Source of the DNA: Octopus sinensis
Taxonomy: Eukaryota
DNA: 64,000 nt
Assembly (NCBI RefSeq): GCF_006345805.1
Contig: NC_043016.1
Span: forward strand, 6,138,001 to 6,202,000
Reading direction: 5' to 3'
Of the stretch, positions 11,401 through 35,400 are shown in pieces. Position 1 is the stretch's first letter, and every line of letters begins with the position of its first letter. The position numbers were made by a program, and so were the translations under genes. A model generated the notes under the pieces. The model was not told the DNA's origin. It ran no database searches and saw nothing but the letters and a program-made list of their open reading frames with translations.

Positions 11401-14400
11401 CCTGCCACACTTCTCAGTCCATCATCACTGTCTCAAAGTCCTGGATACATTTCTAGCTAGTGTCTGGAATCAAGTTGTCGATGTAAGTGTGACAACATTT
11501 TCCTCTTCTTACATCACCATGAAGTGGGTTCCACAAGACTGATTTGGATGCTTCCAGATCAGGGTGGCACATGCAGTGATCAGATAGACACAGCCATCTT
11601 TACCTAATGTCCAATCATTTCACAACTTTCTACATTAATAACAAGAAATCTCTCACTTTTATGAGGAAAGTTTTTTTCTTTATGCCACAAAGAAAATGCC
11701 AACTTTGAGAAATGAAGTTGATAGTAAGACCTTTGGGTATGTGGACACAGGAATGGCTGCGTGGTTAAAAAAAATTCATTTTGAAACCGTATAGCTCTGG
11801 TTTCTTATCTACTGTGTATGATCTACTACACAATCAGGTTGATCAAAAATTTGGTAAAACTGAGCAGAAGCCCATCATGCACGTGTGTACGTGTATGTGG
11901 GTGTGTGTGTGTGTGCATGCATTTTGTTTCAATGTCCACTTTGCTATGCTTGCATGGGTCAGACAGTTTACTAAGGCAAATTTTCTACAGCCTGATGCCC
12001 TTCTGGTTGCTAACCTTTCCCCCGTTTTCAAGCAAGGTAATATTTCTTCATGGACAGATTGGAAACAAAGGTCACCACTTGTATGACAGTGACACTCCGT
12101 TTCCAGCGAGACACATGCATACAATACGAGCATCTTTCCCTCTTCTTTCCATTTTCCAAATCCATTCAAAAGGTTTTGGATCGTCTCAAGGCTGCAGTAA
12201 AAGTTATTAATTCAAAGTGCCATGCATTGAGACTGAACCCAAAATCATGAGGTTTGTGTTTGTGTGTGTGTGTGTGTGTGTGGTGTGTGTGTGTGTGTGT
12301 GTGTGTGTGTGTGTGTGTAATCAAGTAACTCCATAAAAGTAAAAATTTGACAAAGTAGAAATTGATGAAGTGAGCACCGAACTTTGCATCCAAGACTTTC
12401 TTTTATAACAATAATGGATTAAAGAAAAATTTCTTTGATGCAACGCTTCAACACAGCCACAGCCTAATAACAAAAACCAGAAACAACGATATGTTTGCAC
12501 AATATTTCCTTTTTCGCAATGGAAAGTTGTGTAACTCTAATTGTAGAGAAAATAGAAAAAGAAATTAGCAACAGCTAGATTAGTTTGTTCTTAATTTAAT
12601 TAATCTTTATTCAGTGTGTCCTAAACTAACTAATTAATGTTGATGCTATTTGCATTGTGATAACTAGTTTATGGCAAGTAAGTCTGAAACTGAGAACAAA
12701 CAAAAACTTTATGTATACTAGTCTATTCATTCTATTTATCATAAAAATAAAGCATAATATATTATCGTTTGTAAACCCTGCAATTAATTATTCACAAATT
12801 TTTTAACAATTAGTTGGAGGAGATAATTGAGCAAAATTAAAATAACATTGTAGTTGCAAAAAAATAAATAAATAAAAATTAAAAAAAAAGGAAAATATAA
12901 AGATGCAAAAGACAACAGTAAGTTATGACTGCACTAAACAAAATATTGAGCATATCAAGCAGAAATATATAACAAGACAAAGTAAAAGGGGTACAGCAGA
13001 TATATCAGGGTTAGATATAACCCTAATTAGGGTTCGATATTGGTGACAGCAACAAGGGGGAAAGAAAACTATCTCAGCTAGGACTTCAGAAATGTGGTCT
13101 CTCCATTTTTTTTTTTTTTTTCAAGTACCAACACACAACACAGAAACAAAATATATATTGGATATGATATGTGTGTGTGTGTGTGTGTGTGTGTAAGGTA
13201 TTGGGGTGAAGAAATGAGATATATAAGCAACAGGAAAAAATACATAGGGGTAGTATAGGGGTGCAAAAGAAAAAGAGAAAGAAAAAAATAAGGGGAGATG
13301 CAGATATAGTGAGGAGGAACAGCAGATAGACAAGACACACTTGGATAAACACGACATAGTGAAAAAAATAGAAGAAGAAATATGAAGTTAGCCCTATAAT
13401 GCCTTTTTGAAAATTCTTGAGGCTTCAATTATTATTCATATGGAAAGAAAACAACAAGGCTGAAAGCTCACACTATCAACATTTTACATTCCAACATTAG
13501 ATACAGCAGGATGGAGAAATTAACAGAATTGTTACAGCATAGGAGTAAATACCTAGCTACAGTTCTGGGGCTCTACATTTAAGGTTCCACTTCTAAAGGG
13601 ATCAATGTTTTTCTTTATCATTTCTAGGTCAATGAAGTAAAGCACCAGTCAAGTACCAGGGTTCATTATTTCAACTAAACCCCACTGCCTCCCATAATAA
13701 CTGACCTTGTACCTCAATTAAGAAACATCGTTATTACATGTAAGCAATTATAATACTTAGCTGTTTCATTATTTTCAGCTTATTTATAAATTTAGACATT
13801 ATAGGGTTAAGTAGAAGGAAGTAAAAAAAAAATAAGATGAAATAAACAATTAATAAAGGATTACTATTTAAGTAAGCAAGTATTATGAGGGAGTAATCAA
13901 AAAGAAAAATAAACTAAGTCTGAAGAAATGAGAGAGAGAGAGAGAGAGAGAGAGAAGAAAGAACTCAATACTAATGGTAGAGAAGGGTGGGATGGAGGAA
14001 GCAGAGTAAGACAAGCAAGTGAAATGGAAGAATTTCATGGGGAGGAAATGCAATGTTGTGCTTACCATAACTGAACTGGAGACATTGGTGAGAGACTGAA
14101 GTTGCTGGGCTTGTACTGCTGCTACATTCTGGGACACATGTGTTGGGGGAGTTGCTACTGCAGCAGCAGCGACCACCTGTGGAACTTGCTGCTGCTGTTG
14201 TTGTTGTTGCCGCTGTTGCTGCTGTTGTTGTTGCTGCTGTGATTGCTGCTGTTGTTGGGTAACCTGGCCTTGAACTTGGCCAGGTTGTTGTGCGCGTTGC
14301 AGGGCCAACTGCTGTTCGGTTGAAACGTGCTGCATCGATACCAACAAAACATCAATTGAATGGACAAAGATATGCACACACAGACACACACACAAACACA

Positions 14401-32400: not shown

Positions 32401-35400
32401 GACAACCTGTGTATACTTAACAGGGATTGTAGGAGAACCACTTAAAACACTTTCAACACCGACATGATTGACAGTTGGGCAATTCTGTGTAGCTGAAGTG
32501 GTAACTGCTGCCTTAGGAAGAATAGTGGACACTGGCACAGTTTGGGTAGGAGTTGATATCAGGGGTAATTTTTGGCTTGGTGCAGTAGAAACTAGATGCG
32601 TTTGAGTAGGGGTTGCAACTAATAGTTTTTGCGTAGGAGCCGATACTAAAATCTTTTGAGTTGATGAGGTGACTAATAGCTTTTGTGCTTGAGTTGGAAC
32701 CAATAGCTTTTGGGTTGGAGTGGAAAATAAAAGTTTTTGAGTTGGAGTAGAAACTATAAACTTTGGAGTAAGAGAAGTTGTAGGTAATTTCTGTGCTGCA
32801 ATAGTTACTGGAAGTTTCTGTTGTAAGACAGATACTGGGAGTTTCTGCTGTAAGACAGATACCGGAAGTTTCTGCTGTAAGACAGATACTGGAAGTTTCT
32901 GTGTAGCAAAAGTTACAGGTATCTTATGTGTAGCAATAGGTACAGGAACCTTTTGAGAGGGTATCTTCTGTGTTATTGTAGTAATTGGCACCTTTTGTGT
33001 GATAGTAGTGACAGGAACCTTTTGGGAATAGGTTTTAATAGGAACCTTCTGTGTGATTGCTGTAATGGGGACTTGAGTAACAGCAGTTCCAGGTATTTTC
33101 TGTGTAATAGCAGACACAGGGACATGAGTTATAGTGGACACAGGTACCTTCTTCTGAGATATAGCAGAGACAGGTACTTGAGTGATACTACTAATAGGAA
33201 CTTGGGTAATAGCAGACACAGGAACTTGAGTTATAGTTGAAATAGGTACTTTTTGAGTGATAGTATTGACAGGTACTTTTTGAGTTAAAGCCGACATTGG
33301 CACCTGTATTTTTTGTCCTAAAGCTCTGATTGGCATCATATGACCAATTGGTACTTTTTGAGCTAAGGTTGTCCAGACATGAGCAGCTGTTGATCCAGAT
33401 ACAATGCATGTAGCTGCACTGACTGGAACAATATGTGGAACAGAAGTTCCAGTGGAAGTCACAGGCAAAACACGTGTGACAGAGGTGCTAACAGGTGATG
33501 CACAAGCCATTTGAGTGGATGTGCTAACTGATAAGGTATGAGTAGTTTTTGCCGCTGCTGACAACACTTTTACGGTTGTATTGGTTGGTAGTTTGCTGGT
33601 TGATTTCGACTCTACTTTCACATGTTCTGAAACTTTTATGGCCGTTTCTAATATCCTAGCAGAAGAAACTGGAACAGGTGTTGAAGCAGCCGTAGTGGCC
33701 GCTACCTGTAAATCAGCAGCTAGTTTCTCCTGAGCTATTAGGGTAGCTCTAAGCAGTTTCTTTGAATTCACTTTAATTTTTTTAACAGAATTTACCTGTG
33801 ACCCTTTCTTGCTAGTAGTAGTACTAGTAGTGGATGTACCAACTGTTGATGTAGCAGCTGATTTTTTAGATATTACACCACCTGATAACTTCTTAGTAGA
33901 TGCAACTTTGTTAGAGTTAGCCTTTTTGGTATTGGATTTCTTAGACCCAGCACCTTTTTTGCCTGAACCAACCGGTTTTCTACCAGGACCGCCTACCTTC
34001 TTTTTAGCTCCAACTCCTTTTTTAGCTCTTTTAGACCCTACCAACTTTTGATTGCCGACAGTACTAGAAGCAGATGTTTTGGTGTTAATTACAGAATTAG
34101 TGTTCTTACTGGAAATGGAATTAAGATTTAGCACTTTTTGATTTGAAGTAGCCTTGTTTTGGGTACTAGGATTGGATGGAATCTTTGAAACATCCTTCTT
34201 AAGAGCATGCTTCAACATACCAGTGTTTACTGGTGAAGAGTGTTCAGATCTTACGGAATTAATGCCCTTCATTTTCCCACCCCGACTTGAACTGTTTTCA
34301 TCTTTTTCATTATTATTAATGAGTGACTTTCTAGAGCTACTTAGTCCATTGCTCCGAGATTTAGCAATGTCTGAGCTAGCAGCAGATCTTCGAGAACTCT
34401 TACGGCTAGAAGTTATCTTTTCATCAGAAGAGTTTTGCCTACTATTAAAATTCTTATAATTACTCTTTTTCTTATTGCTTTTGTTACCAGAATTCTTTTT
34501 AGACTTAGATTTTTTCACCTGATTATATGCATCATCCCTTGTATATGTAAACAGCATCTCATCTTCTTCTAATTCAGCTCTTATTTCTTCCTCTTCTTTC
34601 AGAGATTTGAGTCGTGCCAACTCCCAGTCTTTTTTAGCACTCTCAATATCTTCCTACAAAACAAAATGCACACATTCTTAATTAGTCAATTTTATCTTTG
34701 TTAAATTTTTACTTCAATTACAACTGTATATTAATCACACAAAAAAATATTTTAATTAACTCTTTTAAATTTTATGACAAGAAAATGAAAACGTTTTAAA
34801 GGTAAACATCAAAGAAATAAATACACAAATGCATGCAAACAAACTCAGGCTTTTAAAATTAATTTTACTTACTTCTGCCATCTGAAGCTCCTCACTACAG
34901 AATGGTTCCATTTGGGTTTCCAAGAAAAGGACAGCATACCGCTCAACAGGAGATAGCTTCAAAAGAAAATTGAAGGAATTATATAAATTTTAAACACCAA
35001 ATTTTGATTTTGGAATTTAAAAAATAATATTAGAAAATATAAATACTGAGAAAAAGAACTGGACAAAAAAAAGAAGATAAAGAGCTTTCATTATAACTTG
35101 CTTTGGTTAACAAGGGATGGAAGAATAATTATCATTTAATGTCTATCTTCTTTGTTGGCATGGGTTGGACAGTTTGACTAGAGCTTGCAAGCCAGAGAGT
35201 TGCAGTAGGCTTCATTGTCTGCTTTGGTAAGGTTTCTGTGGCTGGAGCGTACTGGGTGCTTTTTACATGCGACCAACAACAGGGTCACCAAGTAACTTGC
35301 AAAACAAAGACCTTTCAAGTGGGAGAGAAAGCAGTACTGAGGGAGCTGGGTTTGTACCAGTTGAGTGGTTAAAGTATAATTGAGGCGTCGGGGTACTCGG

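Follow-up and report, generated by a model that had tools for sequence, protein, structure and literature searches.

The 64-kb stretch of Octopus sinensis DNA analyzed here (contig NC_043016.1, positions 6,138,001 to 6,202,000; hereafter the window) very probably bears, on its minus strand, one domino-type gene, of which it covers the 3' two-thirds and which would be the undivided counterpart of the vertebrate SRCAP and EP400 genes. All the features of this gene are given below in window positions and lie on the minus strand. The exons of the Snf2 N-lobe are found at 57129..58514, as delimited by tblastn matches whose outer limits are approximate, and include a Walker A motif. The Pfam model SNF2-rel_dom matches the exon 58523-58323 (E = 3e-15), and the N-lobe is collinear with residues 991-1218 of the "helicase domino" from the annelid Ridgeia. 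The C-lobe is encoded by two Helicase_C exons (41948..42735; exons 42783-42514 and 42151-41924 in the Pfam search, E = 2e-14 and 1.6e-6) and is 94% identical to residues 1865-1931 of the Ridgeia protein. Between the end of the N-lobe, at approximately 55 kb, and the start of the C-lobe, at approximately 43 kb, there is a long exon-poor insertion, the exons of which are rich in Ser, Thr and Ala and which corresponds to Ridgeia residues 1367-1729. A long insertion between the ATPase lobes is a hallmark of SWR1/INO80-type ATPases. The window stops, at position 64000, short of the 5' part of the gene and covers no N-terminal HSA region; the Ridgeia orthologue carries HSA and EP400_N.

Downstream of the ATPase, an exon ending in LLEKE (37413..37595) is followed by an exon of 28 residues (34873..34956), recognized from its alignment to SRCAP and Ridgeia; the limits of both are approximate. 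The last exon segment of this shared region has 45 codons (34519..34653). Its start is set by the acceptor ttttgtag/GAAGAT (slashes mark splice boundaries or the corresponding positions in proteins) and its 3' end is the branch point between two isoforms. From the exon at 37413..37595 through the branch-point exon, the shared stretch aligns to human SRCAP residues 2244-2396 without gaps at the exon joins (E = 1.5e-20, versus 8e-7 for EP400). The region between the C-lobe and the junction is likewise 70% identical to fish SRCAP versus 47% to fish EP400. Percent identity to labelled orthologues was of no help in placing the taxon, as those of the annelid, a gastropod, a spider and the beetle and the SRCAP of a fish all fall in the same range (56-73%); the junction exon of the window bears a mollusc-like signature that is common to gastropods.

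The end of this exon is the feature that interests us. The last shared codons, GAT GCA TAT AAT CAG (the end of DDAYNQ), are followed at 34513..34518 by GTGAAA, an alternative 5' splice site (CAG/GTGAAA) that lacks both +5G and +6T. The initial annotation of the window had singled out this weak internal donor, and its position and composition are as it described them. When the donor is unused, it is translated as Val-Lys, the first residues of a long C-terminal tail. This arrangement recalls Drosophila domino, which also has a SWR1-type split ATPase and A/B alternative ends: in the fly, one gene encodes a shared N-terminal part with alternative C-termini, DOM-A and DOM-B, of which DOM-A has a SANT domain and a Q-rich region and DOM-B an unstructured tail without SANT (PMC7239659). 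We consider it highly likely, from the sequence comparisons presented here, that the octopus gene likewise makes two C-termini by way of one splice site, one of the EP400/DOM-A type (the spliced A route) and one of the SRCAP/DOM-B type (the read-through B route).

In the A route, the first exon past the donor is a phase 0 micro-exon of 36 nucleotides (nt), which encodes 12 residues (25149..25184) and is bounded by AG and GT sites: ttgcag/GTC TAT GTA TGT GAC ATT GAT CAT GAA CCA ATG CCT/gtaagt. It is followed by an exon with the peptide WAPPTPP (19543..19699), by two exons encoding the first (18180..18427) and second (17602..17829) halves of a Myb/SANT-like region, by a further exon (17157..17450) and by an exon with a polyglutamine (polyQ) stretch (14066..14329), so that a Q-rich region is present after SANT. 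The WAPPTPP exon and the exon at 17157..17450 are supported by in-frame joins and by the EP400 alignment, as is the first half of the Myb/SANT-like region; the second half is ~70% identical to EP400. All the A junctions are in phase, the acceptors are AG and the donors GT, and the frame is continuous from the ATPase to the SANT exons. It runs on past 14066, down to which the exons were mapped.

Conceptually spliced, the A product can be aligned with residues 2190-2528 of human EP400 (E = 7e-102) and is unbroken at both junctions. The end of the last shared exon matches EP400 LLTYTREDAYS, the micro-exon peptide aligns to EP400 EYVYEDVDGQTEVMP, and the alignment extends through the Myb-like region and the conserved block that follows it. 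The in-phase joining of the donor to the micro-exon, the WAPPTPP exon and the polyQ exon that had been claimed is confirmed. The SANT assignment made at the same time needs to be qualified: the Pfam Myb/SANT models give only 17.7-18.5 bits on the A part (E ~7e-4), below their cut-offs of 22.9-27, and the call rests on the homology of this region to the Myb-like region of EP400, to which it is ~70% identical and collinear. A junction insert of 12 residues recurs in Daphnia (KWISMDGLEEMP), in the MetaClust sequence P0224 (IWLSDDNMEQMP) and in the hemipteran Ranatra (VNSKTGNPESGN). The best labelled match of the A part comes from the annelid Ridgeia (60%). The coding sequence of the A route is, in terms of homology, validated.

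In the B route, the reading frame continues from the donor for 835 codons (2505 nt, 32014..34518) up to a TGA at 32011..32013, which bears out the read-through announced by the initial annotation. The open stretch of 880 codons is the longest of the window on both strands, the runner-up having 212 codons, and the other two frames of the B segment contain 49 and 68 stops. In shuffled versions of this segment the longest open run has a mean of 88 codons and a maximum of 165, and the probability that 835 codons remain open is ~1.6e-26 at the intronic stop-triplet frequency of 0.069. The encoded tail contains a basic patch and is rich in Ser, Thr, Lys, Val, Pro and Gln. The alignment with human SRCAP passes the branch point into this basic patch (HRRSKKAKAPERPG), and that with fish SRCAP does likewise. 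Further along there is a degenerate AT-hook-like core, GRKP (33973..33984), the only one in the window; the B tails of gastropods, the annelid and other relatives have canonical RGRP cores. A conserved motif of 17 residues is located near the end (32305..32355).

Between the AT-hook-like core and the motif are tandem peptide repeats of the TQKVPVS or QQKLPVSVL type (32675..33285). The DNA periods of these repeats, 24 and 27 nt, are multiples of three, and the repeats are therefore in frame at the peptide level; about 25 such units can be recognized (33285-32675). A lineage-specific expansion seems to have produced them and to have pushed the conserved motif to within 130 residues of the stop, since about 200-600 residues follow this motif in other animals. 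The first AATAAA past the B stop, a candidate polyadenylation signal by consensus match, is found ~0.9 kb away (31112..31117), and a second one at 30760-30755. In three other genomic loci (L001, L002 and L005, see below) the corresponding distances are 0.9-1.5 kb.

The conservation of the B tail was studied in other animals. The complete tail is a poor query, as its low-complexity words saturate the candidate list and only three matches are recovered; a trimmed chimeric query and a 42-column profile of the motif were better. A search with the tail brought out open reading frames (ORFs) on host contigs from ENA metagenome assemblies, which start in the shared exon and continue as Q/VKKKSKK. Together with the window they have one sharp conserved block, beginning with P[QP]. 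Two of these loci, L001 and L005, were inspected with their flanks. In L001, the acceptor tttttcag/GAGGAG and the donor AACCAG/GTGAAG delimit the shared exon and the tail has 944 codons; downstream, there is a 36-nt micro-exon (gacag/GTGTACGTGTGCGAC...CCC/gtaagt, VYVCDETGEQLP), then an IWSPPTPP exon and SANT exons. In L005, shared exons lie upstream, the donor is GCTCAG/GTGAAG and the tail has 598 codons; it is followed by a 36-nt micro-exon (tag/GTCTTC...CCG/gtaagt, VFVSSIDGSEMP) and by LWAPPTPP and SANT exons. The locus L002 has a read-through ORF after the donor AGCCAG/GTGAAG. The same donor, CAG/GTGAAG, is thus found in all three, and the hexamer GTGAA[AG], without the consensus +5G, is kept in four genomes when the window is included. 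The Logan contig L003 (run ERR6349714; 1915 nt) is collinear with the window over at least five intron positions and reads through the donor to a stop and a 3' untranslated region (UTR). Judging from this structure, it is a spliced mRNA-like B-type transcript from another species.

A search of 1.84 billion representative proteins with the motif profile gave 57 matches (E<=1e-3), nearly all of which fit a degenerate consensus starting with [WFY] and ending with [RK]A. A block of 13 residues is invariant across seven aligned B tails, with some positions varying over the 57 matches, and most of the matching proteins carry the EEDEMLFTY...Q/VKK junction 150-850 residues upstream of the motif. Gastropod B-type proteins are known from Biomphalaria pfeifferi (KAK0055030.1), B. 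glabrata (KAI8749092.1 and KAI8753648.1) and Plakobranchus (GFN95546.1); all of these models terminate in the B tail and have AT hooks (KRRGRPRK or ARGRPRK). The protein of the annelid Ridgeia piscesae (KAK2193492.1, 2629 residues) also has a B-type end. Outside the lophotrochozoans, the motif is borne by the spiders Araneus and Stegodyphus, Limulus and the ticks Rhipicephalus and Amblyomma among the chelicerates, and by the bug Rhynocoris among the hemipterans. The open frame together with this conservation indicates that the B tail is real conserved coding sequence.

Some observations on these tails stand apart. A second block, NTVPILEK[MF]A.QL, occurs in several lophotrochozoan tails including that of Ridgeia (P0001-P0003, P0120, P0136); none of the reading frames of the window contains it. 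Seven diverged clusters on ENA contigs of up to 2 Mb (P0197, P0198, P0200, P0204-P0207) form a group of B tails with the junction ...SRDDAYQQ/VKKRNKQL and their own 16-residue form of the motif, and may widen the known distribution of the switch. The protein P0177, which has the junction nearest to that of the window, was considered as a close relative and rejected, as only the conserved blocks are in common.

In total, 115 proteins containing the shared exon were collected, 20 of which follow the A route and ~85 the B route. In almost all of the latter, the first residue after the Gln is Val, as would follow from translation of the GTN of a donor left unused. The branch point ...[ED][DE]A.NQ/V is identical in molluscs, the annelid, chelicerates, the beetle and hemipterans; the comparison with other lophotrochozoans that had been recommended along with the initial annotation returns the same Q/V boundary in gastropods and the annelid. 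In insects, the B-type junction of Tenebrio reads ...EDATNQ/V... and the A-type junction of Ranatra reads ...ARNQ, 12 residues, MWCPPTPP. Taken together, this comparative evidence strongly supports the proposal of a single gene with two alternative C-termini.

Several other scenarios may explain the arrangement of the locus. The 835-codon stretch could be an internal exon, in which case a single long protein would carry the B tail as well as the SANT and polyQ regions and there would be no switch. The GenBank models of Tenebrio molitor (KAH0815093.1) and Limulus (XP_022250926.1) do have this structure, with the B tail followed by MWCPPTPP and IWCPPTPP, respectively. Nevertheless, these fused structures come from computational predictions (that of Stegodyphus carries a low-quality flag) and bypass the conserved 36-nt micro-exon, and human EP400 and the A-type proteins of Daphnia, the hemipteran and others pass from the shared exon to the micro-exon and WxPPTPP without any insert. 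Moreover, a stop ends every genomic B ORF, L003 has both a stop and a UTR, and the full-length gastropod and annelid models finish in the B tail. Such a fused protein is accordingly regarded as very unlikely. At the opposite extreme, the long frame could be devoid of function, either a chance-open intron or a by-product of intron retention, and only an EP400-like protein would be made. The tail is indeed of low complexity, rich in repeats, fast-evolving and without Pfam domains. Yet a chance opening is contradicted by its probability (~1e-26) and by the 49 and 68 stops of the alternative frames, and the repeat periods are multiples of three. Many animals also have an open tail after this donor, the 13-residue block is invariant in the seven tails aligned, and L003 provides a spliced mRNA-like B contig in another species. 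This explanation has next to no probability, less than any of the others weighed here.

It could also be argued that the A exons constitute a second gene further downstream, driven by a promoter of its own and starting from the ATG at 19699, which would encode an Eaf1-like SANT/polyQ protein devoid of an ATPase and leave the ATPase gene always B-ended, in the manner of the separate Swr1 and Eaf1 genes of yeast. The WAPPTPP exon does open exactly with an ATG (19699-19697), as in Ridgeia and many insects, and both Ridgeia (NP493_12g07040) and Araneus ("E1A-binding protein p400") have such a gene annotated beside a B-type ATPase. Nevertheless, L001, L005, the spider and vertebrates have Ile or Leu instead of Met at the first codon of this exon, the conserved micro-exon with its perfect splice sites only makes sense if joined to the shared exon, and proteins continuous from ATPase to SANT exist in Daphnia, MetaClust P0224, the hemipteran and vertebrates. 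The product of a separate gene would, in addition, be without HSA, a domain required by the Eaf1/EP400 platform (PMC7239659). We see only a slim chance of two genes at this locus. Lastly, the switch could be real but convergent with that of insects, having arisen independently. Convergence is how the eLife digest frames the comparison of flies with vertebrates (PMC7239659), the beetle and leafhopper B tails do not have a motif of the window type, and the insects aligned are ones other than Drosophila. Against this stand the identical branch point of molluscs, the annelid, chelicerates, the beetle and hemipterans, the B motif common to lophotrochozoans, chelicerates and a hemipteran, and the 12-codon A micro-exon that is also found in crustacean and insect sequences. 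An independent origin thus appears highly improbable.

The preferred reading is that of one gene with a two-way switch at the donor, and several points weigh against it or limit its extent. The use of both routes in this species is something that we infer from sequence, and the polyadenylation site of the B form is a candidate, placed 0.9 kb after the stop by its consensus sequence. A third isoform combining the B tail with the A exons, as in the fused Tenebrio and Limulus models, may exist. Neither near-identical proteins nor annotated cephalopod isoforms were found in the collections searched, which represent clusters by short fragments. The B tail has no Pfam domain and is fast-evolving and of low complexity outside its short blocks. 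When compared to full-length human SRCAP (6igm_H, 3230 residues), the B-motif profile gives no match at E<=10. Among the insect B tails (P0152, P0007, P0009, P0176, P0171), those of the beetle and leafhopper do not have the motif of the window and share a different block instead, SPRTRSRGTV.I.LWTLD.SPI.PG. The equivalence of B tails over all animals is therefore only partial, as the motif is undetected in SRCAP and replaced in the beetle and leafhopper. The insect side of the comparison consists of insects other than Drosophila. As a separate observation, an RTR(R/S) core is common to the window-type motif and the beetle/leafhopper block, and the two may be diverged versions of one motif.

The switch would work as follows. 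The exon 34653-34519 would be a composite terminal exon ending at the suboptimal donor CAG/GTGAAA. If U1 and the spliceosome use this donor, the exon would be joined to the micro-exon and to the WAPPTPP, Myb/SANT-like and polyQ exons to give an EP400/DOM-A-type protein. If the donor is skipped, cleavage and polyadenylation would take place inside the 9.3-kb intron, and translation would proceed for 835 codons through the basic patch, the AT-hook-like element, the repeats and the motif down to the TGA at 32011, to give a SRCAP/DOM-B-type protein without SANT or polyQ. This competition between splicing and intronic polyadenylation is suggested by the anatomy of the locus. In flies, DOM-B has been shown biochemically to be responsible for H2A.Z loading and DOM-A for H4 acetylation (PMC7239659). 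By analogy with Drosophila (PMC7239659), the product of the A route would scaffold a TIP60/NuA4-type acetyltransferase complex and that of the B route would serve a SWR1-type H2A.Z-loading complex. The partner complexes of both forms are here carried over from Drosophila and should be read as presumptive: the fly complexes are defined biochemically, whereas the gene of the window is known from sequence.

The two C-termini can be compared to the vertebrate proteins. EP400 (p400) is the scaffold of the TIP60 complex, while SRCAP is the ATPase of the SRCAP (SWR1-type) complex. EP400 resembles the A route in its junction peptide, its Myb/SANT-like region, the conserved block after it and the polyQ that comes next. 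It differs from the octopus gene in the length of the junction insert (15 residues in vertebrate EP400 versus 12) and in the lower identity of its ATPase-proximal region mentioned above (47%, versus 70% for fish SRCAP); in humans, moreover, it is a separate gene without a SRCAP-like alternative end. SRCAP, for its part, resembles the B form in having a long low-complexity tail rich in Ser, Thr and Pro without SANT, and shares AT hooks with the mollusc and annelid B tails, although the window itself has only GRKP. Unlike the window, it no longer ends the shared exon with the EP400-like ...TYTREDAY. In outline, the B tail seems to resemble that of SRCAP, with any detailed homology limited to short elements. 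A comparable division of function exists in yeast between Swr1, the H2A.Z-exchanging ATPase, and Eaf1, the HSA and SANT platform of NuA4 (PMC7239659). In yeast these are two separate genes of unrelated length, whereas in the window gene the division would be achieved by RNA processing; also unlike yeast, its A form would unite HSA, ATPase and SANT on one polypeptide.

Alternative C-termini of domino have been described by Scacchetti et al. 2020 in four other insects and one spider; this mode of splicing was suggested to be possibly widespread in arthropods and was contrasted with the paralogues of yeast and humans (PMC7239659). Searches of the literature for domino isoforms in molluscs, annelids or cephalopods, or for a splice-isoform origin of EP400 and SRCAP, returned nothing beyond that study, and no description of the exon structure of Drosophila dom was found. 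The present comparison adds that the DOM-A/DOM-B logic extends to lophotrochozoans and appears to be homologous over the protostomes. The B tail of the octopus is unlike those of the beetle and leafhopper, with its 835 residues, its TQKVPVS repeats and its own motif in place of SPRTRSRGTV.I.LWTLD. Nonetheless, lophotrochozoans and arthropods have in common the place of the donor, a tail that opens with Val, the B motif and a micro-exon of 12 codons, which favors an ancestral protostome state. The initial annotation had left the choice between ancestry and convergence undecided; these shared characters make it likely that the switch was inherited from a common protostome ancestor and not invented twice, and the EP400 and SRCAP alignments are consistent with an origin as early as the bilaterian ancestor.

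These elements can be combined in a broader scenario, to which we give somewhat less than an even chance: the switch at this donor would predate the protostomes, EP400 and SRCAP would have partitioned its isoforms, and the B motif would commit the ATPase to a SWR1-type assembly. If so, the bilaterian ancestor had one gene for both forms and the partition followed the vertebrate genome duplications. EP400 would have kept the spliced route, namely the ...TYTREDAY end, the micro-exon peptide, WTPPTPP and SANT, and SRCAP the read-through route, with its basic patch, AT hooks and long tail. In the published contrast, the single gene of flies and the SRCAP and EP400 genes of vertebrates are seen as different evolutionary routes (PMC7239659), and the eLife digest presents them as convergent solutions (PMC7239659). 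The combined scenario would replace convergence by a subfunctionalization of splice forms, and would make EP400 and SRCAP a possible textbook example of paralogues derived from splice isoforms. The B motif would then be a short linear motif that chooses the SWR1-type over the NuA4-type assembly. Two handles for further study emerge from the comparison: the conserved weak donor for the regulation of the switch, and the 14-residue motif for the choice of complex.

The reading of one gene with two C-termini also has consequences for public annotations, as the many models that split the locus into "SRCAP" and "EP400" or fuse its tails would be in need of correction. B-type "helicase domino" models are already available there for gastropods and an annelid. 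On the Ridgeia contig (1,243,570 bp; P0136 and P0223) and on the Araneus contig (165,182 bp; P0008 and P0225), the locus is split into two neighboring gene models, a B-type "helicase domino/SRCAP" and a separate "Myb-like / E1A-binding protein p400". The ATG at the start of the WAPPTPP exon probably explains the separate gene calls made there. In the Tenebrio (P0152) and Limulus (P0173) models, conversely, the B tail is fused to the A exons.

The introns of the gene contain an interspersed repeat resembling a short interspersed nuclear element, with copies at 15268-15563, 20126-20271 and 23940-24240 and fragments at 53989-54023 and 59496-59533. The copies are 80-86% identical, and the one at 15311-15513 is made up of 3.3 tandem units of 62 bp. 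Microsatellites of the (TG)n and (TA)n types are very abundant (1-1200, 51800-51400, 31900-31300 and elsewhere) and translate as CVCVCV or YIYIYI. The window has 66% A+T and long introns, which is compatible with a coleoid cephalopod genome.

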